From the sequence record OM319461.1: DNA of 64,000 nucleotides, one strand, 5' to 3'. The notes beneath the pieces are model-generated. The model was given only the letters and a program-made list of their open reading frames with translations, made no database searches and was not told the origin of the DNA. The number at the start of each line of letters is the position of its first letter. Position 1 is the stretch's first letter. Below are positions 2,746-27,938 of the stretch, piece after piece. Position numbers and translations under genes: made by a program.

Positions 2746-3112
2746 GCGCTCNGCAGNTATNTCTGACTAGNGGCTCNCGGTNNTTNCCNTGCATNAGNGT
2801 AACCATCATNGANGTNTCNTCTANCCANCTNAGNCCTTCNAANTCANNNAGNCCATCTTGAGACTCCATGGCANNNATNNCTGGATTNTATACCATNANN
2901 GTNANNGNATCNGTACGNGCCATCATCATNGTNACAATGANCTTTTCNACACCNTTCCANTTNCCAACCAACATNNNATCNGTATTNGTNGTNAGTTCNT
3001 TCATGCGCTCNGGNAGNTTNTTNCGNGCCCACNCACTNACTTTNTCGTTCTTAAGTGCATTGGTCCANGANGNCAANANNTTGGCNTTGTCTAAACTAGA
3101 AAGCTTGAACAT
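2735..3112 (-). CDS. Hypothetical protein (125 aa, N-rich)
   Basis: Open frame through the ambiguous region; TCTATATAAC promoter-like motif upstream at 3146-3155. Confidence 0.6.
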   Translation of the reverse strand: MFKLSSLDXAXXLXXWTNALKNXKXSXWXXXXXXERMXEXXXNXDXMLVXXWXGXEKXIXXMMMXRXDXXXXMVXNPXXXAMESQDXXXXXEXXXWXXXXXMMVXXMXXXXXEXLVRXXCXAHEX

Positions 3113-3157
3113 ANNATGTTCCTNNTGTGGTTTNAATACANNGTNGTTATATAGAGA

Positions 3158-3544
3158 TCACTTTGCGTTCATTGCATCNGCGATCNGNNTNAANANCTGG
3201 AANNCCNNNNNCATNANTNNCATNGGTGGGTAAAANCCNTAGCCATCNTCNNCNGGGAAGAAGTNNGTNTGNCNGTATTCNCCNACAGTNAANTTNCCNN
3301 NGNAGATCNCTTCNACTTCTGTTTGAGNNTGNANCATACGNGCATTCTGATCTNNNGTCATTNNTTTNGCTTCNNCATCNNANGGNGANGANTCAAANCN
3401 CAATNNNGNNAAGTNGAANNNNCCANNNTCNACNTNCGNGAAGTCGAACCANATNTCATGGTTGTGNTCATAAAATGTGAANGACGTGTGTTTCTTNGGN
3501 TCNAGTNTTTCTTTGTTNNNGAANNTNANTTCTGANCGNAGCAT
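3158..3544 (-). CDS. Hypothetical protein (128 aa, N-rich)
   Basis: Open frame, follows a terminator-like hairpin near 3575-3597; many ambiguous bases. Confidence 0.5.
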   Translation of the reverse strand: MXXSEXXFXNKEXXXXKKHTXFTFYXHNHXXWFDFXXXXXXXFXXXXLXFXXXXXDXEXKXMXXDQNXRMXXXQTEXEXIXXXXXTXXEYXXXXFFXXXDGXXFYPXMXXMXXXFQXXXXIXDAMNAK

Positions 3545-6555: not shown

Positions 6556-8493
6556 CTAGATGTAGATGTGACCAGGGATGTGGTTACCGAATTGGCTACC
6601 TGCTGCACCAACGTTTGCACGGAACACATTGTTAACTACGTTACCGTCAATTGCTTGACCGTAAACGAAGCCGCTTGCTAGCTGGCTGATGATTTGAGTA
6701 TCAACTAGACCACGTGGGTTCATGTTGATGCCCGCAACAGACATAGCAGCTGCCATGCGTGGACCTAGCTCAGGGTTGAAGAATACACGGATGTATAGAG
6801 TATCGAAGTTACCTTCAGCCGATGGCTCAAGAGCAACGATATCTTTACGACGACCGTCTAGACGTTCTAGACCTTGAGCACCGTCAGTTGCACCAGGGAT
6901 GAATGATTCAGAGAATGCATTCACTGGAGAATCGATTGATGCTGCTTGCTCTTTAGCTGCTGCTACTGCAAATAGCGTATCGATGTGACGGATGTCAGAT
7001 GGAGAACCATCAGGTAGGTTGTATTCACCACCGTGAACGATAACTGTGTTAGCTTGGACAACTTCTTTGTCTTTAGCTTGAGCCCACTGTTTAGAGAACT
7101 CACCGCCAGTCATTGCGTCGAACAGGTTGATCAATGCATCGTTAGCGCCAGATACACGTTTAGCCGCAGCTAGGAATAGCTGTTGAGTCCAAGATTCAGC
7201 AGTACCGATACCGATGTCCATTGCTAGTGTCATTGAGTTATGCACGAAGTATGCGTCACAGAATGCACGGAATGTAACAGAGTCAGTAGAAGAAGCTGCT
7301 TGAGTGTACTCAATCATTTTTGGCTTAGGAGTAAACTGAACACCAGCACCAGCGTATGGTTCGTATTGGTAACCTAGTACACCTAGATCACGAGAGATAG
7401 GACCACGCTTAGCAGGGTTAGCGAAGATTGATTCCCAGTTACGACCAGATGCCAACAGAGTTGTAGACATTAGACCGATTACTGGAGTTAGTGGGTTTTC
7501 GATAGTTACACGTGCACAAGACTCAGATGCATCAACACCTGTTAGTACTAGTAGCGCATGGTTTTCTGGACGAGCGCCATTGTGCATCATACCTGGTTGC
7601 ATTTGTGGCATGATGCCAGGAGTACGGATAGTATCGAACTTAACTGCTGTACGAGAAAGTAGAGCAGACATACCGTCGTCATGTGGGTCGAAGCTGTTGT
7701 TCTTACGCTCTGAAGCGCGAACTGTGATAACTGCGTCACATGCTGTTGCACGGCCATTGCTCATTACAACGTTTTGACCAGGCAGGATTTCTGTGTCAAC
7801 GTCAACTTGAACTTCTTGGCTCTTGAACAGAGACACGTCAACCAAGTTAGCAGGGTTTGCTTTAGACTTGATTGCGTTTGCTGCTAGGTTGTAGATGCGC
7901 TCAACGTTACCTTCTTCAAGGATTGGTTGGTTCTTACCTACAGCGTAGAAGTGTACAGGCACAACTGCTTCACCAGCTACTTGGAATTTCTCTGCTAGGA
8001 AAGCACGTACTTTACCGATGTAGCGTTCGTTCCAGCATTTAGATACTGGGAAGTCGATTGTGATTTTCTTACCGCCGCCTGCGAAGTTTTTGTTAACTAG
8101 CTCTTCGTGTTGACGCATTGGAGCGTAAAGAAGTGCTTCAGGTAGAAGTGCGTAGAAGAAAACACGAGACTGAACTTTCTTAGCGTATACCATGATAGGT
8201 AGAGCTAGATCAGCTGGCTTAGCGTGGAAGAACTTAACTGCGTCTGCGCTACCGTCGCCTTTTTGGATTTCTTCAGTCGCTTCTACGAACTTAGCGAATG
8301 TACCTTCACCTAGAGAAGATACTTGAGTGTGACCGAATGCTGCAAGCATAGACTTGAAGCCGCCAGTTTGTTGTGCAGTTTGTTGTGGTTGAGCTGCTGC
8401 TGGAGCTGCTTGAGTTTGCACTTGTGGCTGAGCTACTTCTACTTGAGTTTCAGCTGATTTGTTTTGTTGTGCGTTTGGTGCTACGAATGTCAT
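6556..8493 (-). CDS. chmA: Chimallin (phage nucleus shell protein)
   Basis: 645 aa with a disordered Q/A-rich N-terminus; diagnostic synteny (DNA pol - opposite-strand core gene - ChmA - nvRNAP beta'). Call rests on size and synteny, not on alignment. Confidence 0.8.
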   Translation of the reverse strand: MTFVAPNAQQNKSAETQVEVAQPQVQTQAAPAAAQPQQTAQQTGGFKSMLAAFGHTQVSSLGEGTFAKFVEATEEIQKGDGSADAVKFFHAKPADLALPIMVYAKKVQSRVFFYALLPEALLYAPMRQHEELVNKNFAGGGKKITIDFPVSKCWNERYIGKVRAFLAEKFQVAGEAVVPVHFYAVGKNQPILEEGNVERIYNLAANAIKSKANPANLVDVSLFKSQEVQVDVDTEILPGQNVVMSNGRATACDAVITVRASERKNNSFDPHDDGMSALLSRTAVKFDTIRTPGIMPQMQPGMMHNGARPENHALLVLTGVDASESCARVTIENPLTPVIGLMSTTLLASGRNWESIFANPAKRGPISRDLGVLGYQYEPYAGAGVQFTPKPKMIEYTQAASSTDSVTFRAFCDAYFVHNSMTLAMDIGIGTAESWTQQLFLAAAKRVSGANDALINLFDAMTGGEFSKQWAQAKDKEVVQANTVIVHGGEYNLPDGSPSDIRHIDTLFAVAAAKEQAASIDSPVNAFSESFIPGATDGAQGLERLDGRRKDIVALEPSAEGNFDTLYIRVFFNPELGPRMAAAMSVAGINMNPRGLVDTQIISQLASGFVYGQAIDGNVVNNVFRANVGAAGSQFGNHIPGHIYI

Positions 8494-8561
8494 CGTGGAC
8501 TCCTGGTTTCTTTGTGGTTAATCAATTCGAATTGATTGGTTTAATGTTCCAATCCATCATT

Positions 8562-8571: not shown

Positions 8572-8642
8572 AATCAATATTTCTTGAAATCAACTCTAAA
8601 GGGGGTGGTAATCACCCCGTACTGGTTTCCCAGTACGAGTGT

Positions 8643-8655
8643 CATACTATTAGGT
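8643..8655 (-). promoter_or_regulatory. Late-type promoter motif ACCTAATAGTATG
   Basis: Identical 13-mer at 22430-22442(+); near-identical copies in the 18-19 kb array; ends in TATG like phiKZ late promoters. Confidence 0.55.
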
Positions 8656-8830
8656 ATAAACACTAGTAAGTTTTACTGGGAGATTCATTATCGAAAGAGA
8701 TCGACTGATCACTTCCTATATAATGGAGATAGAGTGTTAATTTTGAAATACATATTCATAAACATCTGGGTTATATAGATATCGGCTTTTCTTGAAATCA
8801 AATTAAATAGAGGATTAACAGGAGGAAACT

Positions 8831-12111: not shown

Positions 12112-12292
12112 GAGAATTCTCCTTTTAGACTATCCTATTATCAGGGTCGGTCGAAAAAGAAAAAAAAAAGAAAAAGGATGAGTCGGGTCCCAACACCCGA
12201 CTCATCCTCTCACCACCCCAATGGAACATCTTTCAATGTTCCGCAGCATAGATTACTCGCAGCACTCTTTGCTATACTATTGGGGATGCATG

Positions 12293-16445: not shown

Positions 16446-16544
16446 TTACAAATTAGCTTGGGATTTGGCCTCATGAGCCGTATTATATAGAGTCTTTACA
16501 TACTATTGACTCGGTATGTCCATTTGTACAAAAGAGGGCCAACA

Positions 16545-17354: not shown

Positions 17355-17744
17355 TTAACCCACTTGCTCAACCATGAGGTCATGCGATTTTAAAGCTGCT
17401 TTAATTCGCTGATATGGCTTTTCCATTTCTGGTAAGCCTCTACTCATAAGGACTTGGTATCCTTCGCGATAAGCGGCTTCCAATTTACTTAGACGGTTAC
17501 TTGATAGCTTACGACCTGTTGACGTGACATGATCGCGTGCATAAATAGTAAACAAAGCGATGTAAAGATCTGCCTCTCCTATCTCAGCAGGAGGTGCTTT
17601 CTTCTTCTCGAGTATCTCTTCTACGTTTTCCATGTGCTGTTGGTTAACTTCATCCCTTTTCTTACTGACAGTCCAGTAAGATGCTAACGCAACTAAGCCT
17701 ATCACCAACGCGAGAGCAATATAACCGTAACTTGTCATGGCCAT
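17355..17744 (-). CDS. Membrane-anchored hypothetical protein
   Basis: N-terminal hydrophobic helix YIALALVIGLVALASYW followed by basic residues. Confidence 0.7.
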   Translation of the reverse strand: MAMTSYGYIALALVIGLVALASYWTVSKKRDEVNQQHMENVEEILEKKKAPPAEIGEADLYIALFTIYARDHVTSTGRKLSSNRLSKLEAAYREGYQVLMSRGLPEMEKPYQRIKAALKSHDLMVEQVG

Positions 17745-17792
17745 TCCTCTTGTTGTTATAATCTATATTGGTTGTTGTTTTTGTTTTTAGTC

Positions 17793-18074
17793 TTAGAGAC
17801 TGCAAGCTTTATCTCGGCATACACGCTTGATGTCATCGTCACTGATGCCTGGAACCAACTTATTACCCAGCCCATTGGATCGTCTTACTTGTGCGATCTG
17901 TTGAATCTTCTTCTCTGCTGCATCGGGTTGCCATTTATGGGTGGCCAATGAATGGAGTTTACCCAGCGTTGAAGTTTTCTCAGATTCACACTCTCGTAAA
18001 ACTGACTTTCTTTCCATAGAAATTATGAGCCAGCTAAAGCCGATTAAAGCTGCGAATAGTATCGGTGTACCCAT
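17793..18074 (-). CDS. Membrane-anchored hypothetical protein
   Basis: N-terminal hydrophobic helix ILFAALIGFSWLIIS; GAGGTAGG RBS. Confidence 0.7.
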   Translation of the reverse strand: MGTPILFAALIGFSWLIISMERKSVLRECESEKTSTLGKLHSLATHKWQPDAAEKKIQQIAQVRRSNGLGNKLVPGISDDDIKRVCRDKACSL

Positions 18075-18164
18075 ACTTCGCCTACCTCTTATTAACTAAT
18101 ACGATTGAAGGAGTAACTTTAATTAACTAAAATTATACCCATAGGATTCGCTGTCATGAATGAA

Positions 18165-18285
18165 AAGAAAAAAAAAATAAACTATAACCTCCCACCCCGA
18201 AGGGCAGGAGGAATAGCAAGAGAGAACCTGAATGAATCCAGGTGTCCAATCCCGACCAAAGAATTGGATGCGTCACTTAACCATA
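18165..18285 (-). ncRNA. Candidate small RNA, array unit 5 (about 120 nt)
   Basis: ACCTAATCTTATG at 18294-18282; two hairpins (TCCAAT/ATTGGA, CCTG/CAGG); C/U-rich linker; terminator 18211-18188 plus long U-run. Confidence 0.6.
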
Positions 18286-18302
18286 AGATTAGGTGACCGA
18301 AT

Positions 18303-18595
18303 AAAAAATAAGATAAGGGGGTAGGGGCAACACCCCTACCACCATCGATGTTTAGGGACCAACTCATCCCGAGTCAATCCGTAACGATACAAACGTTATG
18401 AAATTTAAAAAAGCAGTAACTATTAAGCATTGTGCTTGTGGACCCTAAGGAAAGTCCGAAGGTAGGACAACACGAGAATGTCATCACAACTCACTTAACC
18501 CATGGTAACAGGACATGACCATTTAGAAGTAAGTCAGCTTTATTGAGGTTAATCATTAAAAGCTTAAGTTCAACAACAAAGGTTTCTTTGCTATA
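18303..18595 (-). ncRNA. Candidate small RNA, array unit 4 (about 290 nt, may be two RNAs)
   Basis: TAATCATATAG at 18601-18591; terminator GGTAGGGG/CCCCTACC 18340-18320 plus U-run; no ORF. Confidence 0.5.
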
Positions 18596-18613
18596 TGATT
18601 ACACTAGGCGGTT

Positions 18614-18785
18614 AAAAAGAAATTCACCCTCCCACCAAAGGCAGGAGGGTAGCTCTAGGAATCATTATGTCTAATATCAGAAAGCCACCACCACGATCAG
18701 AGGAGTGAACAGTTTTCCAAACGATGACGTGCCTAACCAATTAGGCAAGCAGAAAAAGCAGAAAGAGATCAACACTTTTACTATA
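18614..18785 (-). ncRNA. Candidate small RNA, array unit 3 (about 170 nt)
   Basis: ACCTAATAGTATA at 18794-18782; GCCTAA/TTAGGC hairpin; CACTCCTCT; terminator 18650-18626 plus U-run. Confidence 0.6.
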
Positions 18786-18804
18786 CTATTAGGTAGAAAC
18801 AAAC

Positions 18805-19117
18805 AAAAAGAATAATTAGCTTCCCCGCCATAGGCAGGGAGGCTTCACACTCTTAACGGTTTCGTTGCAGATCATAAGGTAAACTGCAATGGGTCAATCT
18901 CATGCAGATGACTTTAGAAGGCAGCCTCCCAACCATAGGAAAGGAGGCATCACAACTAAAACAATCTAAATTGGAGGCTTCACTCAAACAATTACCAAAC
19001 AGGTAAGAAATTAGAGAGACTATCATGCGACAAAGGTACAGGATACCAATGAACAATGAAAATGACTTAAGGAGATTCATCAACACTTAGGAGAGTAATT
19101 AATGTACTGAAGTCATA
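18805..19117 (-). ncRNA. Candidate small RNA, array unit 2 (about 310 nt)
   Basis: ACCCAATAGTATG at 19126-19114; multiple CTCC motifs; three GTGA(A/T)GCCTCC repeats; terminator 18843-18819 plus U-run. Confidence 0.6.
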
Positions 19118-19149
19118 CTATTGGGTGTGGTTGTTTTTTTTTAACGACA

Positions 19150-19270
19150 AAAGAAAAATACCTACCCCCTCCCGTTTGGGAGAGGGATGGTAGTTCAGAG
19201 GAGATAGACAACACAGAGACTACTCGCCAGTCTACTGCATTCACGCCGTCGTCATAACATGATTGTCTAC
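19150..19270 (-). ncRNA. Candidate small RNA, array unit 1 (about 120 nt)
   Basis: ACCCAATTGTGTAG variant at 19280-19267; closing stem TAGACAA/TTGTCTA; TCTCCTCT; terminator 19193-19161 plus U-run. Confidence 0.5.
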
Positions 19271-19379
19271 ACAATTGGGTATAATCCTTTTGAACTTTCT
19301 TCAGGTCTTATGGGGACAGGCTTCAGCACCATCTGATCAAAAATAACCAGTTGATTAAATTATTTGACACGAGCTTATT

Positions 19380-20600
19380 ATATCTTTTACTTATATCTTT
19401 AGATATAATTAGGAAAAAGATATTAATAACAGATTAAAAGAATATAAAGAGAGGTCCATTTACTTTATCTAAAGATAAAGATAAATATAATAACGCGCGA
19501 GAGCGCGTGGTTATTTTTCTCATAAAAATGATTTTTGAAGATTTCTCCCGTGAGGGAGGAATCATGATTATTTATATCTTTCGTAGATTCTAAGGATTCT
19601 AGGGATTGAATCATTTTGAACATCTCATGGGTATTATGTAGTAGAATCTCGTGATGTGTAACTTCATCTTAGTAAAACTAGATACAATATCATAATCTAA
19701 CTTAACTAACATGAATTTATAACATATCATAATTTTATTGCACTATGTGGTAAGGTTATTCTTATTCTACGACACAATATATTAAGATCTTTTGAATTTT
19801 ACTATGAGCCTTTAAATCTTAACAAAGTTTCTATTTTGTTTGCTTCTCTTAAAGGACTTAGTTAAAACTTGTGTGAGTTAATTCAATCATTAACTCCTTA
19901 GAGCTCCTGTATGGTTCTCTAAGACAATTATCCATTTCTATCTGATGCATCAATCAGATACAATAAGTTAAACTTCCTCATGGGTTATGTGGAAGCTAGT
20001 CGAACTTATATAGCTAAGTGATAACTTTCACAGAAGTTATCGGTATCAGATAAACTCATCTGATCCAGAACAACTCAATACTACCGAATTAACATTAAAA
20101 AATTCCCCAGTATCCAGAGTTATCCACATCGATGTATCCACCTCTCCCCTTAACGGGGGAGGGAGTGGGTATATCTCCGTCTACGAGCAAATAGCATATC
20201 CCTATACACGAAAATCACCAGATTTCACATAGAGACAAAAATAATAATATCTCCAGCTCTTTCGAGCCAGATGAAAAAAAAAATCGAAAATTTTTATATT
20301 AGCTTGTGGTTGTTGCTTATATCTTCTTCCCTATGCTTCTCTATCGATGATAGTCTAATGACATAGCTAGCTACTAGTTCTCATCTATCTTACATCTAGA
20401 TGAATCCTATCTATCTCTGTCTAGTCTTTCTATCTCTATCTCCCTATTATCTCTTTCTAAGATATACGCAAAAAACCCCCTCCCAGACGGTTCCCCCTTT
20501 CGAAAACTAAATCATTAGATTTAACTGTTTTTTATGATTTATAATTGAGAGAAAGAAAAAAAAAGAATAAGTACAGGAGAGAGGATAACCCCCTCTCCAT
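19380..20600. other. AT-rich ORF-free region, candidate replication origin
   Basis: No ORF of 60 aa or more; many TATCT/AGATA repeats, palindromes (19489-19515, 20140-20170), homopolymer tracts, one perfect TTATCCACA. Confidence 0.45.
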
Positions 20601-20604
20601 AGTC

Positions 20605-20955
20605 TTACAAGGCCAGATGTATAGATTCCTCAGGTAGATCATCGAATAGCTTACGATAACCTCGATTCAGATACCATCTACGAAAGTATCGATTCTCATC
20701 TAGGTTACGTGCAGCAGCTAACGAGTAGACAAACATCGTCCAGTCAGATAGCTTACCCTGTTTAGCATAGTCGATTAGCATCTCTGAGTCGACAAGCTCA
20801 CGATGGAACTCGGTAAACTCAGCCAGTAGCTTACTGTCGTAAGTATCGATACCTTTGTCATATGCAGTCCATCCGAAGATGATTGCTATTAGGCTACCCA
20901 ATACTGTTAGATCTAGATTGGTTAAAACATGTAGAGGATCAAAGAACATCTCCAT
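20605..20955 (-). CDS. Membrane-anchored hypothetical protein
   Basis: Hydrophobic LTVLGSLIAIIFGWTAY; GGAG RBS. Confidence 0.7.
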   Translation of the reverse strand: MEMFFDPLHVLTNLDLTVLGSLIAIIFGWTAYDKGIDTYDSKLLAEFTEFHRELVDSEMLIDYAKQGKLSDWTMFVYSLAAARNLDENRYFRRWYLNRGYRKLFDDLPEESIHLAL

Positions 20956-21289
20956 TGTCTACTCCTGGTACGTTAGTTAGTTTGTTGAATTCACGTGAGA
21001 AGATCCGTACGGCTATCTGAGGGGATTTCATCTCACGAGGTATGAGGTTGTCAGGGTACTGATCTAAAAACTGCTTATGGAGCTTTAGAGCGCATTCTCG
21101 ACCATGTGAATAAGCATCGTTACGATGACTAGCGTCAGCTAGATCACGAATAAGATCTACGAACTCGTGATTCCATCGAAGGATAAGACGACGCTGTCTC
21201 TCAGTCAAGAAGCGAACATAAATAAGGTCACCGAAGATACCGGTGAACATAAGAACTAAGATTGCGATGTCGAACATGTTAAACTCCAA
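20939..21289 (-). CDS. Membrane-anchored hypothetical protein (paralogue of 21279..21584)
   Basis: N-terminal TM helix; motif LHKQFLDQYPDN. Confidence 0.7.
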   Translation of the reverse strand: MEFNMFDIAILVLMFTGIFGDLIYVRFLTERQRRLILRWNHEFVDLIRDLADASHRNDAYSHGRECALKLHKQFLDQYPDNLIPREMKSPQIAVRIFSREFNKLTNVPGVDNGDVL

Positions 21290-21584
21290 AGTAATGTTCT
21301 TGACGTTTGTCTATAAACTTGCTGAAGCTGAAGTTACGTACAAACGGGTTATTAGGATACTGATTGAGGAACGAAAGATGAATTGTCCTAGCAGCCTCTG
21401 CTGCGGCTTTTGGGTCATCTGTCTTGATGGCGTACTCGCGATAAGCCTGACTCATGCGTTGGACCATGTAGACACTTTCACCATTGCATGAATCAGATTG
21501 TACTTGTGGCCAGATCTTTATTCCGCACCAAACAGCAAGAATGATGAGGGTCCCTATTGCGGTGGTAGCAAGAATAACTTCCAT
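21279..21584 (-). CDS. Membrane-anchored hypothetical protein (paralogue of 20939..21289)
   Basis: N-terminal TM helix; motif IHLSFLNQYPNN. Confidence 0.7.
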   Translation of the reverse strand: MEVILATTAIGTLIILAVWCGIKIWPQVQSDSCNGESVYMVQRMSQAYREYAIKTDDPKAAAEAARTIHLSFLNQYPNNPFVRNFSFSKFIDKRQEHYFGV

Positions 21585-21719
21585 CAGTTCTTCTCCACGG
21601 TTTTGGCATTATGGTCAACTACCCAGCATGAGGCACAAGAGCCACACGTGAAGATTTCCTTGTCTCCCGCATCCATCGAGTCCGTTAACTTGGCTGTGCA
21701 GTTAGGACACTTGTTCCTT

Positions 21720-22346
21720 TTAATCAGCTGATAAGCAGCTTGCATCATTTGTACTATAGACATGGTGTTTCTCCCAGTGGTATTTTAGTGGAAAGGCATC
21801 GTCCGACAGAGGGATAGAAACCACGATTAGGTTTTCCTCTACTGGCACAGATGCCGAATAACGGTTTGTTGGATTACCATCGCCTTCTTCGGCAATGGCT
21901 TTGGTATAGTTGTGCAGTAGACATGATACGGCATCGGTATCAATATCTTGTTCCATTGCCTCTGTGATCTCTTTGTCGAGCACAGCAAAGTAACGACATT
22001 GGATCTCTGGGATGTCAAGTGCATCCATCACATCAAATGAGCCTTCCTGGTTTAACCGTAGACGACTCATGTTAGAGCAATTGGTTTTTACTAGCTTAGC
22101 GCTGTAATAACGATACCCAGTCCAGCGAAGAAAATCTTCCTCTTCGTTTTCCGGACGACCGGTCACAAGATATTTCACTAGTGGACCGATATGGTGGACG
22201 ACGAGATAAAGCGGAGTATCCGACTTACGACGCGCGAGTAATTGGAGTAGAAACGAAACAGCCTCTTCCTCATGGTAGAAAGTAGCTTCTAGGTTTGTAT
22301 TGAAGTGTAGGCCAGTAGGCATTGTTTTGAATGTAATGTCTTCCAT
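21720..22346 (-). CDS. Hypothetical protein (208 aa)
   Basis: AAGGA RBS; first gene after the early motif at 22388. Confidence 0.7.
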   Translation of the reverse strand: MEDITFKTMPTGLHFNTNLEATFYHEEEAVSFLLQLLARRKSDTPLYLVVHHIGPLVKYLVTGRPENEEEDFLRWTGYRYYSAKLVKTNCSNMSRLRLNQEGSFDVMDALDIPEIQCRYFAVLDKEITEAMEQDIDTDAVSCLLHNYTKAIAEEGDGNPTNRYSASVPVEENLIVVSIPLSDDAFPLKYHWEKHHVYSTNDASCLSAD

Positions 22347-22387
22347 TGGTTTATTCCTTTTTGGTTTTAATGCATCAATCTACATTG

Positions 22388-22397
22388 GTAATATAGA
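22388..22397 (-). promoter_or_regulatory. Early promoter motif TCTATATTAC
   Basis: Exact repeat of the motif upstream of a minus-strand operon. Confidence 0.7.
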
Positions 22398-22438
22398 GCT
22401 GATCCTCCAATGAAAAAAAAAACAACCATACCTAATAG

Positions 22439-22691
22439 TATGCACAACTCTGCCTGAACGATTACGTTTCGTGTGGAACTCCAAATGAAAGTGTGCATTG
22501 AATGTGAGTCATAGAGCTACACCGTAGGACTATGCATGCCGAGCTGCTTAATCGAATCACATCGACCCTGGGACTTTACCCCAGTAAGTTGACGTGTGTA
22601 GGTTTTGACCTCGCTCGTTGAATTGCCCGAGAGGGCAGGTAGGTACGGACGGCCCTTGTGGGTCGTCCGTGCTCTATACCTCTATTTTTTA
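22439..22691 (+). ncRNA. Structured RNA upstream of TROVE gene (Y RNA or leader candidate, about 250 nt)
   Basis: Starts at the TATG of ACCTAATAGTATG; stems ATGCACA/TGTGCAT, CACATCGAC/GTTGACGTGTG, GAGA-tetraloop hairpin 22623-22637; strong terminal hairpin 22642-22673 plus U-run. Confidence 0.65.
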
Positions 22692-22704
22692 TTGAGGACT
22701 TGTT

Positions 22705-24255
22705 ATGAACAAAAATAAAATCACCCAGACTCTTTTCGAAAGCGAAGTAGAATTAAGTACTTTGCTGGATTCCCTTAAGGAACGCAATGTGATCAGTCTC
22801 GAGACTACACTTAAGCGCATTCTATTGACGGGCACGAATGGTCATGTGGCATCTATCGATTGTGGCGATCAAGTTTATTCCGACGTAGCCTTCAATGGTT
22901 ATGAAGAACAGATCAAGCAACGTGGTAGAGAGATCACTAGTTTTGTTACATCCCAATCATATCCTTTTACAAAAGAAACAAAAGCAAATCGATTATTCGT
23001 CTTGGCAAAAATCGCCGGTAACACAGACGACTTCGAAGCGAGTAGTTATGCATTGAATACAGCAGTTGATCTCTGTATGGATGCTGAAGACATACTTCGC
23101 TTTGCATGTTTCATTTCATACTATCGTGGCTTTGGCCGCATGGTTAAGAAAGTACTTAGCCGTTGGTACCTTGAACGAGATCCTCGTGACTTGTTGTGTG
23201 AGGTATTGGCATGTAAGAAGGTAACGGTACAGTTCGATGAAAAACCGATATCATTTAGCCACCGTAATCTTGTACGTCGTTTGTTTCTGCGTGGCAGTGA
23301 TGACTTACAAGACGCATGTCTGCGAATTATCAAAGGATACCGTGGAGACGCCTCAGAGATCCCTCAGCGCTTCTTGACCCTACAAGAGGTGTTAGGCCTT
23401 AACTTATGTACTAAAGGCTCTGTGGAGACCGCTGCGAAGATCATAGAAGGATTACCTTTTGATCATACCGTATATCCGAAGAAGTTCTTGTACTACACGG
23501 AAATAATGAGTGCTTTGTTTTATGGCAAGCATGTCACTCCTGAGAAGTTCCTTGACTTCGTGAAGATTGATCCGACATTCGAATTCTTAGATGACCGATT
23601 GGCAGATCGCTTTATTCATATTGTCGGCGGATGGCTTCGTGACCAACGCATCACTCCAGTAGATCTTTTAATCTATCGTGAGCTACTCGATGCTGATCGT
23701 TTCAAAGAGACACGTAGACTATTGCTTCGTCGCTATGAAGAAGTCGAGTATCCAGAACGTGGTGTGGAAAACAATGTAGTATTCCTTTACCTCAACTGGG
23801 ATCAGATCAACCGAGAAGTTGTTGCTAATGCACTTGATCGTGCCAAGTCACTTCGCTGTATGTTGGTCATCGTTGGTGAGGGTACATTTGTATTGGATCC
23901 TAAGGACGTAACCCTGGATGCATTATGTAAGCACCTGTCAGTTGTTGAAAAGGATCATGTCATAATGCCTTCTATGTCGTTTATTCAGATTCTGATGACA
24001 CAGCCGGTTGCCTATGACAACGTAGTTATCTATGAGCATCGTCCTGTAGTTAAGTCAGACCATTATCGTAAAGGCTTCCTAGACGCCCTGGATACGTATT
24101 TGACTGGTCGTAACCCATTGACCAAGATAATCCACCAAACGGCCGTAGAGGACGCTACAGTGATTCTGGATGAACCACGACATGCTGGTCTACTCACAGT
24201 AAAAGGACTAGGTACACTACAAACTAAGATTGTAGATATCTTCCTTGGAAAATAA
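22705..24255 (+). CDS. Divergent Ro60/Rsr-like TROVE-domain protein
   Basis: RGFGRMVKKVLSRWYLERDPRDLL...FSHRNLVRR resembles the TROVE GxGR...WY...SHRDLLRL signature; alpha/beta C-terminal domain in the vWA position but lacks DxSxS. Confidence 0.7.
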   Translation: MNKNKITQTLFESEVELSTLLDSLKERNVISLETTLKRILLTGTNGHVASIDCGDQVYSDVAFNGYEEQIKQRGREITSFVTSQSYPFTKETKANRLFVLAKIAGNTDDFEASSYALNTAVDLCMDAEDILRFACFISYYRGFGRMVKKVLSRWYLERDPRDLLCEVLACKKVTVQFDEKPISFSHRNLVRRLFLRGSDDLQDACLRIIKGYRGDASEIPQRFLTLQEVLGLNLCTKGSVETAAKIIEGLPFDHTVYPKKFLYYTEIMSALFYGKHVTPEKFLDFVKIDPTFEFLDDRLADRFIHIVGGWLRDQRITPVDLLIYRELLDADRFKETRRLLLRRYEEVEYPERGVENNVVFLYLNWDQINREVVANALDRAKSLRCMLVIVGEGTFVLDPKDVTLDALCKHLSVVEKDHVIMPSMSFIQILMTQPVAYDNVVIYEHRPVVKSDHYRKGFLDALDTYLTGRNPLTKIIHQTAVEDATVILDEPRHAGLLTVKGLGTLQTKIVDIFLGK

Positions 24256-24264
24256 ACCAAATAG

Positions 24265-24368
24265 TATGGCTTTTTAAAAAGCTTCGGGACAGAGTAAGTG
24301 AGGGCTTACTGGTTCTTCTATTTGGTTAAGATACTATTTCTTCCCGCCCTTCGGGGTGGGTATTTTTT
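24265..24368 (+). ncRNA. Candidate small RNA downstream of TROVE gene (about 100 nt)
   Basis: ACCAAATAGTATG at 24256-24268; hairpins GCTTTT/AAAAGC and AGTAAG/CTTACT; UUCG terminator 24343-24360 plus U-run. Confidence 0.5.
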
Positions 24369-24431
24369 TTTTCGCCAAACAAAAAAAAAGAATAAAAGAT
24401 AAGCCTACTCCCCGAAGGGAGTAGGGCTTTA

Positions 24432-25466
24432 TTAGAACTCGATCTCGTCGAAGTTGATGTCGTTTTGTAACGGTGTTTGTTGCTGCGGCGCTTCTTGATG
24501 TTGAGGCTGTTGCTGCTGCGGTGCAGAATTGAACTCATCAGTTTGCTGCTGTGGCTGTTGCGCTGGAGCTTGGCTTTGACCTGAGTTTACAGATGGAATA
24601 GCCGCTGGCGGAACATAAGCAATACTTTCACGAATAGAGAATGGACCAGCTGAGATAACTGCGCCACGGAAACCATCGCGTGATTGCTCATTGATTTCTT
24701 TCATTACTTGGAATTCTTTCGGTGCTAGACAGCGCTTCATGAATTCAGGTAAGTTGTCGTACTCGGCAACCATGTTAACTTCATTGTTCTTGACTTTAAC
24801 TTTGCCTTTCTTAACAAGACCGTATTGACGACCATCTAGATCCATACCAAAGTCATGCGAGTACGTACGGAAACCGTAGTCTACAAAATCATCTGGTAGA
24901 GCAGAGTATGCCATAAACATTAGGAAGTCAATGCTTACTTTTGACAAGCGGTTAGCAGGACCATCAGGAACTAGCTCGGCCATGAACTTGTTAGCTGGTT
25001 TTACTTCCATGCCGTTGTAGGCATTAAGAATACGGCGGTGTTTGTCGATCACGTAACGTGTGTAACAAGGAATGTGACGGAAGTCTGTCTCTTCGCTGTT
25101 ATGGATCCACATGATAGGTGAACTGTACTTAGCGTGATAGAAGTTACTTTCGTAGTTCGTATCAAACTTTTCTAGACGTGGGAATTCCGGATGAGTGTGG
25201 TGAATACCAAACTGCATTGTGTTGTACATTGCTGCTACTGGAATCGGTAGAGGTGTACGACTTGGATCGCCATCTAGAACAATCGTTTCTTTAGAAACTT
25301 CAGTACCGCGTGTACCGTAGTCACGTAGAGCTGCTTTGTTTTCGTGTTTGCATGCTGCTTCGATAAGAGGGTGAAGTTCATGCTCGCGTGCTAGTTGAGG
25401 ACGAGGTTTAGGTTGAAAGCCACCACCACCGCCTCCGCGGCGACCGCCACGATATCCATAGGACAT
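24432..25466 (-). CDS. Putative nucleic-acid-binding protein with RGG N-terminus and SSB-like acidic tail
   Basis: MSYGYRGGRRGGGGGG start, P/Q-rich linker, ends NDINFDEIEF; own terminator 24404-24425. Confidence 0.6.
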   Translation of the reverse strand: MSYGYRGGRRGGGGGGFQPKPRPQLAREHELHPLIEAACKHENKAALRDYGTRGTEVSKETIVLDGDPSRTPLPIPVAAMYNTMQFGIHHTHPEFPRLEKFDTNYESNFYHAKYSSPIMWIHNSEETDFRHIPCYTRYVIDKHRRILNAYNGMEVKPANKFMAELVPDGPANRLSKVSIDFLMFMAYSALPDDFVDYGFRTYSHDFGMDLDGRQYGLVKKGKVKVKNNEVNMVAEYDNLPEFMKRCLAPKEFQVMKEINEQSRDGFRGAVISAGPFSIRESIAYVPPAAIPSVNSGQSQAPAQQPQQQTDEFNSAPQQQQPQHQEAPQQQTPLQNDINFDEIEF

Positions 25467-25543
25467 GTTGATTCTCCTGACAGGTTAAATATTTTAAAAG
25501 GGGAGACGCAGCTCCCCGCATATAATTTATCAAAAAAGAAAGA

Positions 25544-25864
25544 TTAAATGTAGACCTGCCCAGAAGCGGGCAGCACGGTGTGATAAAGACTCGCCATTGA
25601 GGCAACTTCTTTGTTTGCATCCATCTGTAGAGTTTCCAATTGCTCTAGGTTAGCCGCAACTAACTGTCGAACAATCGGATCTTCGTGAATAGATAATGCT
25701 TGGTAATCCTCTGGACCTTGAATTGAATTCTCTAGGAATAGAGCTTCTAGTTCTTCTGCATTAGAATAACTATTGAGGCCGATGCGTTGGTGCAAACGAC
25801 CTCTCCAAAAGAAGTGTTGTCCTACAATGACGAGTGGATGGTTTTTTACAATTGCGCGAATCAT
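25544..25864 (-). CDS. Hypothetical protein (106 aa)
   Basis: Operon ORF; short HEAT/LRV-like segment EDPIVRQLVAAN. Confidence 0.65.
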   Translation of the reverse strand: MIRAIVKNHPLVIVGQHFFWRGRLHQRIGLNSYSNAEELEALFLENSIQGPEDYQALSIHEDPIVRQLVAANLEQLETLQMDANKEVASMASLYHTVLPASGQVYI

Positions 25865-25865
25865 C

Positions 25866-26567
25866 TTAGTACCTGTTAGTTACGTCGATGTCCCCTTTGA
25901 TTTCTATGCCTGTGAGGTCTTGATTCAAAACGTCCTCTAGATAAATATCGGCGTCGATAGAATGTACGTTAGTCATATCGAATAGAAAGGGACCATACAA
26001 CTTTAAAGTTTTTCCTTCTATTCTAATTCCTGCGTCTGTCTCTTTTGAAGACAAGTCAGGTTGAGTAACTGTAATGTAGCTTAGTAAATCTATCTTCGGC
26101 GATTCTTCCGCAGACACAATGAGGTCTTTGCGCAGGTCTTCTTCTGACTTAACAAAGATCGTCAGGTTGGCCATCATTTTCGAGTGACGCTTTTTCTCCT
26201 GATAGTATTCGAAGCTTGCAGGATCCATAAAGAAGTCACAACGAGGTTGACGCATCTTTGCAACAATCGACATGTCCGAATCGATTAGCGTGATGCCTCC
26301 TTCAAACAGACAATCTGACATTGTGCTGATGATTGAGTTAACAATAAACACACGACCACTACAGCGCCAGTTACGACGAATGCGCAATGGGTCAGTAGTA
26401 TCAAAGCCGACAAAGATGATGTCGCCATTGTGTGGCGGTATTGAGTAATTCAAGTCCTTCAGCATCTGTGGATTGATAATGATTGTCTTGCCGTTAGCAC
26501 ACCCAGTTTCTATAGTCTCGAGAAAATACTGACATGTATAGTCTCTTTCCTTATTAATGTTAAACAT
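25866..26567 (-). CDS. Hypothetical protein (233 aa)
   Basis: First ORF after the early motif at 26651. Confidence 0.7.
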   Translation of the reverse strand: MFNINKERDYTCQYFLETIETGCANGKTIIINPQMLKDLNYSIPPHNGDIIFVGFDTTDPLRIRRNWRCSGRVFIVNSIISTMSDCLFEGGITLIDSDMSIVAKMRQPRCDFFMDPASFEYYQEKKRHSKMMANLTIFVKSEEDLRKDLIVSAEESPKIDLLSYITVTQPDLSSKETDAGIRIEGKTLKLYGPFLFDMTNVHSIDADIYLEDVLNQDLTGIEIKGDIDVTNRY

Positions 26568-26650
26568 GTTATATACCTTTGATTATTAAATAAATTATTG
26601 ATAGACCCAACATAGGCCCATTGATAATTCATCTGTGAATCATCATGTAG

Positions 26651-26660
26651 GTAATATAGA
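26651..26660 (-). promoter_or_regulatory. Early promoter motif TCTATATTAC
   Basis: Exact repeat; a divergent late-type CTAATCATATAG lies at 26682-26693(+). Confidence 0.7.
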
Positions 26661-26723
26661 CTTCACAATACATTGAGAAAACTAATCATATAGTAAAACA
26701 CGTAGCCAAGACGAGGAGATATC

Positions 26724-27938
26724 ATGGCTTATTCTTCCATTCGTGCAGTGTTCGATGATTTCAGTAACCTGACCGTAGATAAAAACTTTATCCAAAAACT
26801 TACGTTTTATGTTTACGGATTCATCAACAAAAACGAAACCCATACTGCTCACTTTGGTAGTAACCTGGTGGGTGTTCGTCCTGTCCGTTATGTAGATGCC
26901 GATGCGATTCGCTGGCTAGAAGACATACTGGGCATTGACGAGAAACGTGACTGTCAGCAGGCATTGTTCACTGTAGATCACGTAGAAAAGAATCACCGCG
27001 TTCGCAGTGACATCGTCAACCTGTCTTTCATCTATATAATGCATCGTATCGCAACTTCTAAGTTAGATCAAAAGACAAAAGATGAAGCGCTAATACTTAC
27101 GATCATCATGAATCTGTCAAAGCACATGTGTTCACTTCTATCGCATCGTTTTAAATTCCCAAGTGATGAAATCATCGCACAACAACTATATGAATCGCTC
27201 GATAACAAATCGCATCTAAAGCGCTACGGTAGTTGGTTTAACATGATGCGTAATACGGCCCTGGAAATGCTGGAGCCTAAGGGTATTCATACTGCACGCA
27301 AAACATGGCAGACGATGGCCCGCGACAAAGATGTGCTCTACATGTGTGGGGATATACAGGACCGCCTGGCCGGTCAGATTAACCTATTGACAGAGAAATA
27401 CCATGAAATCAAGAATAACTCAGATCGCCTTACCCTTAATTCTCCAATCAACAGTATTGAAGGTGAAGCAGTTCTCGCTGAATTCATTTCAAAGGAACGG
27501 CATCTTGTTAAAGACATGCTCGAAATTGCCAAAGATCCCCGTGACTTTATTCGCGATGAATTAGTCGACGCAACATTAGAGATCATCTCGACAGCAGAAG
27601 AAACGCATTTCCGTAAAACCCTAAACTACCTAGCGGATAATATTTCGGCAGTGCCTGCTTATCAGGAAACAGTCTCTAAGCTAGTTGTCTTTATTCTTAC
27701 CGAAGCACGCCAAGGTCGCATCAATCTAAACCAAGCATCAGAAATCATTGGTCGCTTGCGTTCTACGATGCGCTCGTCTCGTGTCAAGAAGAAAGATGCA
27801 CTGGAGCTCAAAGAGATCTTCCGTACTTTGGTAGAGGATGCGATTCCTACTGCCCGTGACCCAATCAAGGTCGCTACTCAGATTGCCGTGATGATTTATA
27901 TTGCATTGCGCATGCTGACAATCAATCGTTACCGATAA
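26724..27938 (+). CDS. Virion structural protein (phiKZ gp32-like)
   Basis: 404 aa, HFGSNLVGV motif, convergent with the terminase. Confidence 0.55.
   Translation: MAYSSIRAVFDDFSNLTVDKNFIQKLTFYVYGFINKNETHTAHFGSNLVGVRPVRYVDADAIRWLEDILGIDEKRDCQQALFTVDHVEKNHRVRSDIVNLSFIYIMHRIATSKLDQKTKDEALILTIIMNLSKHMCSLLSHRFKFPSDEIIAQQLYESLDNKSHLKRYGSWFNMMRNTALEMLEPKGIHTARKTWQTMARDKDVLYMCGDIQDRLAGQINLLTEKYHEIKNNSDRLTLNSPINSIEGEAVLAEFISKERHLVKDMLEIAKDPRDFIRDELVDATLEIISTAEETHFRKTLNYLADNISAVPAYQETVSKLVVFILTEARQGRINLNQASEIIGRLRSTMRSSRVKKKDALELKEIFRTLVEDAIPTARDPIKVATQIAVMIYIALRMLTINRYR

Follow-up and report, generated by a model that had tools for sequence, protein, structure and literature searches.

Ro60 and Y RNAs are conserved from bacteria to humans, and the evolution of the partner RNAs and the role of the system in viruses are poorly understood. 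Y RNAs gate the Ro60 ring or tether it to other factors, and the bulged helix of the metazoan Y RNAs reads GGUC[C]GA. Y RNAs are 80-130 nucleotides (nt) long, carry the site for Ro60 in a long stem where the 5' and 3' ends pair, and are encoded beside Ro60 in >250 bacteria and phages; the YrlA type carries the motif GNCGAAN0-1G near its 5' end (PMC4201824). The Ro60 protein of Thermus phage phiLo binds two RNAs in vitro (Yrl1 and Yrl2), which are encoded upstream of its gene and were chosen for a bulged CGAA motif bordered by a stem that joins the 5' and 3' ends (PMC12135203). Prematurely terminated RNAs derived from 5' untranslated regions (UTRs) are common in the jumbo phages 201phi2-1 and phiKZ (PMC11512511). 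Here we analyse a putative RNA, RNA-U, directly upstream of a TROVE gene of Vibrio phage C-ZP2022 (OM319461.1), together with a second unit, RNA-D, located 3' of the TROVE stop codon. The window, i.e., the whole stretch of 64,000 nt analysed, has its position 1 at position 186001 of the record, and RNA-U occupies 22442-22690 on the plus strand (249 nt). From sequence comparison, we rate at about even the chance that RNA-U is a discrete, Y-RNA-like non-coding partner of the adjacent Ro60-like protein, co-expressed with it by way of a leaky terminator.

Fold and conservation of RNA-U

RNA-U lies in a 358-nt intergenic gap. On one side of it is a leftward gene (21720-22346, minus strand), on the other a rightward gene for a protein of 516 amino acids (aa), annotated in the record as 'TROVE containing domain protein' (Table 1). 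Vibrio phage vB_pir03 (pir03 below) is 84% identical to C-ZP2022 over the region. Both are jumbo phages of 286-288 kilobases (kb) and encode multisubunit RNA polymerases. Protein searches recovered TROVE homologues (38-41% identical) on contigs of uncultured phages with the same gene order. The TROVE protein of sm033 is 36% identical (tblastn), and the sequence upstream of its gene is the same as that of contig L009.

The plus strand of RNA-U folds at -96.2 kcal/mol, compared with -76.3 +/- 5.0 kcal/mol in dinucleotide shuffles (z = -4.0; 0/200 as good). The minus strand gave z = -3.0. The original prediction had placed here, just 5' of the TROVE gene, a structured RNA between a promoter-like motif and an intrinsic terminator, and this description is borne out; the arrangement is also conserved in relatives. 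Present as described are the late-type motif ending in TATG, the small GAGA-tetraloop hairpin (P3, GCCC-GAGA-GGGC) and the long terminal stem (P4) with a U tract before the ATG at 22705.

The conserved helix of RNA-U, P1, joins 22538-22544 (in block C) with 22613-22618 (in block D). Its core, GAGC in block C with GCUC in block D, pairs in 6/6 sequences. The nucleotide 5' of GAGC, which is C in five sequences and U in one, is best left bulged, as read from its flanks. Beyond the bulge the next two positions pair in all six (C:G, U:A or U:G, then G:U or A:U). The consensus is 5'-RY[Y]GAGC/GCUCRU-3', with a bulged pyrimidine, edged by conserved unpaired UG and CCUC. Blocks invariant across the upstream regions are AGUCA (in 5/6 sequences; AGUCU in sm033), CGAGCUG (UGAGCUG in sm033), CCUCGCUCRUU and the terminator core GGAYGGCC/GGUCGUCC. 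Block D occurs once in the 64-kb window. The order of the modules is alike in all RNA-U lineages: the blocks that form P1, a variable long hairpin, a small hairpin and the covarying terminator. The stretch from CGAGCUG to CCUCGCUC is not conserved in sequence, yet it forms a stable long hairpin in 6/6 sequences (z = -2.1 to -4.6). The 5'-terminal hairpin domain is absent in L003, L006, L007 and sm033.

The bulged helix singled out earlier, CACAUCGAC (22558-22566) with GUUGACGUGUG (22588-22598) and its cap CUGGG/CCCAG (22568-22572/22580-22584), is real and in the place given for it. It forms in the isolated module and in the pir03 fold, and carries a compensatory change at 22560/22594, but it is missing from the full-length minimum-energy fold of C-ZP2022. 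It belongs to the lineage-variable hairpin P2; the conserved helix is P1. The single-sequence minimum-energy fold of C-ZP2022 pairs the AGUCA region with block D (22497-22531/22587-22623), which excludes P1. We rejected the long-range pairing of this fold (22504-22531/22587-22614) as the native structure because it is absent in pir03 and the other lineages and clashes with P1.

RNA-U is 90% identical between C-ZP2022 and pir03, compared with 84% for the TROVE coding sequence and 68% for its third codon positions. On the two-sequence consensus fold, 17 of the 27 differing columns are unpaired and six make up three compensatory pairs (22513/22531, A:U to G:C; 22560/22594, C:G to G:C; 22626/22635, C:G to U:A); in the other four, a change on one side leaves the pair intact, and no column disrupts pairing. 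Between L003 and L006 we counted three compensatory changes, four one-sided changes and no broken pair. Two single-base indels in the 5' domain, C-ZP2022 versus pir03, argue against a coding role of RNA-U. A small open reading frame (ORF) within it was rejected, given frame-breaking indels and no conserved ORF.

In a model-fitted alignment, 94% of the cells for terminator and P1 pairs are paired, whereas moving the partner by 1-3 columns gave 36-54%. The covariation score of these pairs is 0.356 versus 0.205 in shuffles (0/500 as high), and compensatory changes affect 7/20 pairs of the terminator. Covarying structure upstream of TROVE homologues, which had been proposed as a check, was found.

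Table 1. Features of the RNA-U locus and of the corresponding BONAISHI region. Coordinates are window positions, except in the last row.
Feature	Position	Strand	Basis or comment
Early-type promoter motif TCTATATTACCA (minus-strand reading)	22386-22397	-	Predicted to serve leftward operon; outside RNA-U
Late-type promoter motif CTAATAGTATG	22432-22442	+	TATG ends at G22442, the predicted transcription start
5'-terminal hairpin domain, GCACA/UGUGC closing stem	22442-22496	+	Folds; C-ZP2022 and pir03 only
AGUCA block (22507-22511) and hairpin CAUAG/CUAUG (22510-22514 with 22530-22534)	22507-22534	+	Conservation, compensatory change
Block C, 5' strand of P1, G-C-[C bulge]-G-A-G-C, then conserved UG	22538-22546	+	Invariant CGAGCUG
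P2, long irregular hairpin with the earlier-noted bulged helix and CUGGG/CCCAG cap	22547-22608	+	Structure kept, sequence not
Block D CCUCGCUCGUU, unpaired conserved CCUC, then 3' strand of P1, GCUCGU	22609-22619	+	Invariant except one R
P3, small GAGA-tetraloop hairpin	22625-22636	+	Hairpin here in 6/6 sequences, sequences differing
P4 terminator	Hairpin 22637-22681 (19 pairs), U tract 22685-22690	+	Pairing and covariation
Ribosome-binding site (RBS) GAGGA	22694-22698	+	Before the 516-aa divergent Ro60/TROVE gene, 22705-24255 (+)
RNA-D unit	24258-24372 (RNA 24268-24372)	+	Late-type motif CAAATAGTATG at stop codon, then about 105 nt
YrlA-type Y RNAs (RF02553), BONAISHI MH595538.1 (L138)	8441-8552, 8635-8754	-	59 and 36 bits

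The Ro60-like protein and the same slot in related phages

Single-sequence searches of NCBIfam, PHROGs and PDB with the 516-aa protein gave no match. A profile built from five members of the family had a sole match in PDB, Xenopus Ro60 (1yvp, E = 0.045), and this match is collinear (residues 34-169 with 31-173). A search of 1.8 billion representative proteins with the profile gave 238 matches, eight of which were checked with NCBIfam. Six of these eight belong to the Rsr model (E = 1e-70 to 1e-130), and the two closest intermediates had no match. The AlphaFold model of the protein is of modest confidence (predicted local distance difference test, pLDDT, 68; predicted template modelling score, pTM, 0.45) and shows helical repeats that lead into an alpha/beta domain. 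Its top Foldseek matches (2nvo, 9kop, 9l5y) include Deinococcus Rsr (2nvo, E = 3e-9) and the Ro60 of phage phiLo. The gene encodes a genuine but very divergent Ro60/TROVE homologue, judged over the HEAT-repeat ring and the vWA domain, and the TROVE label is right as a statement of remote homology, by way of the family profile and the fold search. A further profile search added no members to the close TROVE family, and protein-guided scans of viral and metagenome contigs confirmed no further TROVE relatives. The TROVE gene of L009, a Logan contig, is broken into two ORFs that overlap (1154-2651), through either a frameshift or an assembly error; it is intact at 516 aa in sm033 (L137, 6146-7696).

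In Vibrio phage BONAISHI the syntenic gene encodes an Rsr-type Ro60 (NCBIfam, E = 1e-70) that is 22% identical to the C-ZP2022 protein (E = 2e-15). The 764-nt intergenic region upstream contains two YrlA matches on the strand of the gene (E = 3.5e-12 and 2e-5). Both score under the family's gathering cut-off of 69. They precede ORF49c, labelled 'RNA binding protein', and the record annotates neither. Vibrio phage Yong XC31 keeps the flanking genes but lacks the TROVE gene, YrlA and RNA-U alike. Because the syntenic slot of BONAISHI holds two YrlA RNAs, and Yong XC31, without the gene, has neither RNA, we conclude that the slot upstream of the TROVE gene is a Y-RNA slot in this phage group and that the divergent clade fills it with a different structured RNA. 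Given the two classical Y RNAs in the slot of a related phage, RNA-U is probably a new kind of partner RNA.

The distant TROVE relatives L008 and L010 have units running from a late-type motif to a terminator directly upstream of the gene (z = -2.5 to -5.2), unrelated to RNA-U in sequence. In L008, two tandem promoter-to-terminator units (2410-2590) in the 664-nt intergenic region before TROVE recall the Y RNA pairs seen elsewhere. An RNA-U covariance model scores its own sequences at 79-126 bits and has no match in the L008 or L010 upstream RNAs, in the BONAISHI intergenic region or elsewhere in the window. These other RNAs are either unrelated to RNA-U or diverged beyond recognition. DNA-pattern scans of viral and metagenome contigs gave, among the matches listed, GC-rich chance matches and no further RNA-U copies (none with a neighbouring early-type motif and 1/120 with a U tract).

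We identified no Rfam family in the window or in any of the loci, at gathering or permissive thresholds; an HgcC match (E = 6.4) was dismissed as chance. A search with YrlA and Y RNA models, put forward as a check of the Y-like assignment, returned nothing at E<=10 (22250-22800), E<=1 (17700-26800) or E<=0.1 (the six homologous loci). The YrlA model did detect its positive controls, in Mycobacterium phage Ghost ahead of the Ro-like gene (E = 3e-5) and in BONAISHI, with the E values given above. For the earlier suggestion of a Y-like RNA, a Y-RNA-like role has strong backing from genomic context, through the two YrlA matches in the BONAISHI slot; membership of an Rfam Y RNA or YrlA family is not supported, even at E<=10. 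The absence of a transfer RNA (tRNA)-like T-loop, also noted before, was confirmed: ARAGORN detected no tRNA-like gene, whether in the window or in seven loci, and T-loop patterns are absent from all upstream RNAs. Neither the upstream nor the downstream RNAs contain an exact GNCGAAN0-1G. The sequence closest to it is GCCGAGCUG, CGAA shows no conservation, and the conserved block reads RYCGAGCUG. No stem joins the ends of RNA-U: the 5' end folds locally into a hairpin, and the terminator hairpin makes up the 3' end.

Like YrlA, RNA-U is structured, has conserved blocks and lies directly upstream of a Ro60/TROVE gene on the same strand; unlike YrlA, it has no T or D arms, no GNCGAAN0-1G and no covariance-model match, and is about twice as long. 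As with Yrl1 and Yrl2 of phiLo, the non-coding RNA is just upstream of a phage Ro60 gene and is recognised by context rather than by a family model. However, the conserved CGA of RNA-U reads CGAG in an internal helix, and there is neither a bulged CGAA nor an end-joining stem. The single bulged pyrimidine of P1 next to CGA is reminiscent of metazoan Y RNAs; this likeness is loose and serves as a lead only. The RNA-U helix is internal and not of the GGUCCGA type, and the RNA is 184-252 nt long with no Rfam match.

Transcription signals, proposed mechanism and alternatives

The late promoters of phiKZ read TATG, with the G as +1 (PMC4666361). By this analogy, transcription of RNA-U is predicted to start at G22442. 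In the window, 9/15 near-matches to AATAGTATG are intergenic and aimed at a downstream gene or RNA unit, and intergenic DNA is a small fraction of the window. The 5' hairpins of RNA-U and RNA-D both start exactly at the predicted G of TATG. At the motif site, L003 and L006 (AATAGTTTA) and sm033 (AATTATTTA) have TTTA variants without TATG. Another TATG inside RNA-U (22531-22534) is not conserved in pir03.

The motif GTWATATAGA was found at 3146, 8562, 8770, 16436, 22388, 26651, 41186 and 63693, always on the plus strand, so that it reads TCTATATWAC on the minus strand. In the window it occurs in one orientation only, 34-91 nt 5' of minus-strand gene starts, and two of the sites have no plus-strand gene to serve. 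TCTATATWAC is probably the early-type promoter of this phage group, and the copy near RNA-U is invariant across all homologous TROVE loci. We considered GGTAATATAGA, which is invariant and located 36 nt upstream, as a rightward promoter of RNA-U; orientation and gene-start statistics speak against this, and it is best read as the minus-strand promoter of the leftward operon.

The terminator ends 15 nt before the ATG and 4 nt before the RBS. As no late-type or other promoter-like motif was seen between the terminator and the TROVE ATG, we infer that TROVE messenger RNA (mRNA) arises by read-through of the terminator.

In the mechanism we propose, the non-virion RNA polymerase would start at G22442, at a late promoter of the TATG type, and most transcripts would stop at the 19-pair hairpin and U tract, releasing an RNA of about 250 nt. 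The remaining transcripts would continue past the terminator, and no other source of TROVE mRNA is visible. RNA and protein would thus be made together, in a ratio set by the terminator. RNA-U would then bind the Ro60-like ring; the likeliest docking site would be the invariant core, made up of P1 with its bulged pyrimidine and of the UG and CCUC that are conserved and unpaired. By analogy with Y RNAs, it may gate the ring or tether it to other factors.

Several observations weigh against RNA-U as a partner RNA. It shows none of the sequence or structural features that define known Y RNA families; at 184-252 nt in the relatives it is about twice the usual length of a Y RNA, and its 5' and 3' ends do not pair together. 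It is known from six distinct sequences only, representing about five lineages, and the folds behind the substitution counts were derived from these same sequences. The closeness of the terminator to the RBS, with no promoter between them, fits a cis-acting leader equally well. Structured RNAs with terminators also follow other late-type motifs before unrelated genes (z = -5.3 at 12273 and z = -3.2 at 8643, both minus strand). Given these leaders and the 5'UTR RNAs common in jumbo phages, part of the RNA-U architecture may be generic.

The main competing explanation, which we consider unlikely but worth weighing, is a purely cis-acting leader or attenuator, in which the terminator sets the level of TROVE mRNA, possibly with autoregulation by the TROVE protein, and the terminated fragment has no function. 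Conserved blocks are typical of protein-binding leaders, and the arrangement of a terminator ending just before the RBS, with no other promoter motif before the ATG, is kept in 8/8 lineages. In this respect RNA-U resembles autoregulatory leaders of the ribosomal-protein type, which are structured, have invariant blocks and have a terminator abutting the RBS of an RNA-binding protein gene. Units of premature termination in 5'UTRs are common in jumbo phages (PMC11512511); those of 201phi2-1 and phiKZ share with RNA-U a promoter followed by a terminator within 250 nt before a gene, and a structure conserved among relatives. They differ in having no known protein partner, whereas RNA-U is tied to a gene whose relatives bind such RNAs. 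Also unlike the ribosomal-protein-type leaders, RNA-U has no conserved antiterminator pairing that we could find. With its 3' strand withheld, the 5' strand of the terminator pairs with different partners in each lineage, and its complementarity to upstream segments is no better than in shuffles (z = -1.6 to +1.9). The alternative long-range fold of C-ZP2022 is not conserved, and the BONAISHI slot holds bona fide trans-acting Y RNA genes. The attenuator reading offered in the original prediction keeps the support of the abutting terminator and of the lack of a second promoter; a classical RNA switch is disfavoured by the missing antiterminator, and control that depends on the protein may still apply.

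It is still less probable, and in our view quite improbable, that RNA-U is simply the structured 5'UTR of a late unit, in a house style that serves, for instance, RNA stability or timing and has no specific link to TROVE. The late-type motifs at 12273 and 8643 (both minus strand) do precede strongly structured RNAs, one with a very strong terminator, at unrelated genes, and the ORF-free region of 18.1-20.6 kb has 14 terminator-like hairpins compared with 2.0 expected from shuffles. However, structure is lacking in other late leaders (z = +1.0 at 16499 and z = -0.2 at 18782, both minus strand). The blocks of RNA-U are unique in the window and invariant although the protein is only 36-41% identical, which is unexpected for a generic leader. 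RNA-U and the TROVE gene occur together, and Yong XC31 lacks both. The unique invariant blocks and this co-occurrence speak for a specific role.

RNA-D, other units of the window and significance

RNA-D has two hairpins, a single-stranded UUCUUC...UGGUUAA and a strong terminator (24343-24360, followed by T10), and its fold has z = -3.97. The unit is present in all eight lineages, and its 99% identity between C-ZP2022 and pir03 is the highest of any feature of the locus. A late-type motif abuts or overlaps the TROVE stop codon in 8/8 lineages, in differing registers. Covariation was found in 13/16 pairs, and an RNA-D covariance model has a match at the cognate site of the distant locus L008. 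No plus-strand gene follows RNA-D. By analogy with known systems, which usually have two, RNA-D may be a second partner RNA.

A rather doubtful alternative is that RNA-D is the true Ro60 partner and RNA-U only a leader. At 105 nt, RNA-D is within the size range of Y RNAs and stands alone, with its own late-type motif, its own terminator and no gene after it; its near identity to pir03 and its detection in L008 also fit, as does its absence from BONAISHI, which has YrlA instead. Against this, RNA-D has no stem of 5' and 3' ends if it starts at the G of TATG, no CGAA-type motif and no Rfam match, and a closing stem that includes the stop-codon region would make it a 3'UTR element. The two RNAs also need not be alternatives, as known systems have two Y RNAs.

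The single strand of RNA-D (24313-24318) reads UCUCC where the TROVE RBS is GGAGA (L003, L006, L007, sm033), and UCUUC where it is GAGGA (C-ZP2022, pir03). This could reflect anti-Shine-Dalgarno pairing between RNA-D and the RBS; it represents a single evolutionary event and may be due to chance. Pairing of RNA-U with RNA-D, and of RNA-D with the TROVE RBS, was judged by eye only and set aside as not robust.

Elsewhere in the window, about 2.3 kb between 18100 and 20600 are nearly ORF-free. Most of the 14 terminator-like hairpins there lie on the minus strand, and the region has late-type motifs at 19122 and 18790 (minus strand). Identity to pir03 is 85-97% in many of its 100-nt bins, and the same gap is present in L003 and L006. 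The region may be a cluster of small non-coding transcription units. At 12124-12281 (minus strand), a late-type motif just past the stop codon of the upstream gene is followed by a structured RNA of about 110 nt (z = -5.3), a very strong terminator and then the next gene, a design that resembles the two TROVE-flanking units. The deposited sequence has runs of ambiguous bases (N) at about 3100-3200.

Returning to RNA-U as a partner RNA, we tentatively extend the proposal to the Vibrio jumbo phage clade of C-ZP2022, pir03, sm033 and uncultured relatives, with less than even confidence. In this clade Ro60 would have diverged too far for family models, YrlA would have been replaced by two RNAs that flank the gene, and RNA-U would represent a new class of Ro60-associated RNA without tRNA mimicry, doubling as a terminator-based device for protein-to-RNA dosage.

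A single syntenic slot offers a natural comparison between Rsr with two YrlA RNAs (BONAISHI), a diverged TROVE protein with unrelated RNAs (C-ZP2022, pir03, sm033) and nothing at all (Yong XC31). One, and probably two, unannotated RNA genes are added to genomes of phages considered for phage therapy in aquaculture. If RNA-U binds the protein, Ro60 rings can switch to a partner without a tRNA-like module, and the locus would be a compact, mutable system in which to learn what features the ring requires of its RNA and how a jumbo phage benefits late in infection.

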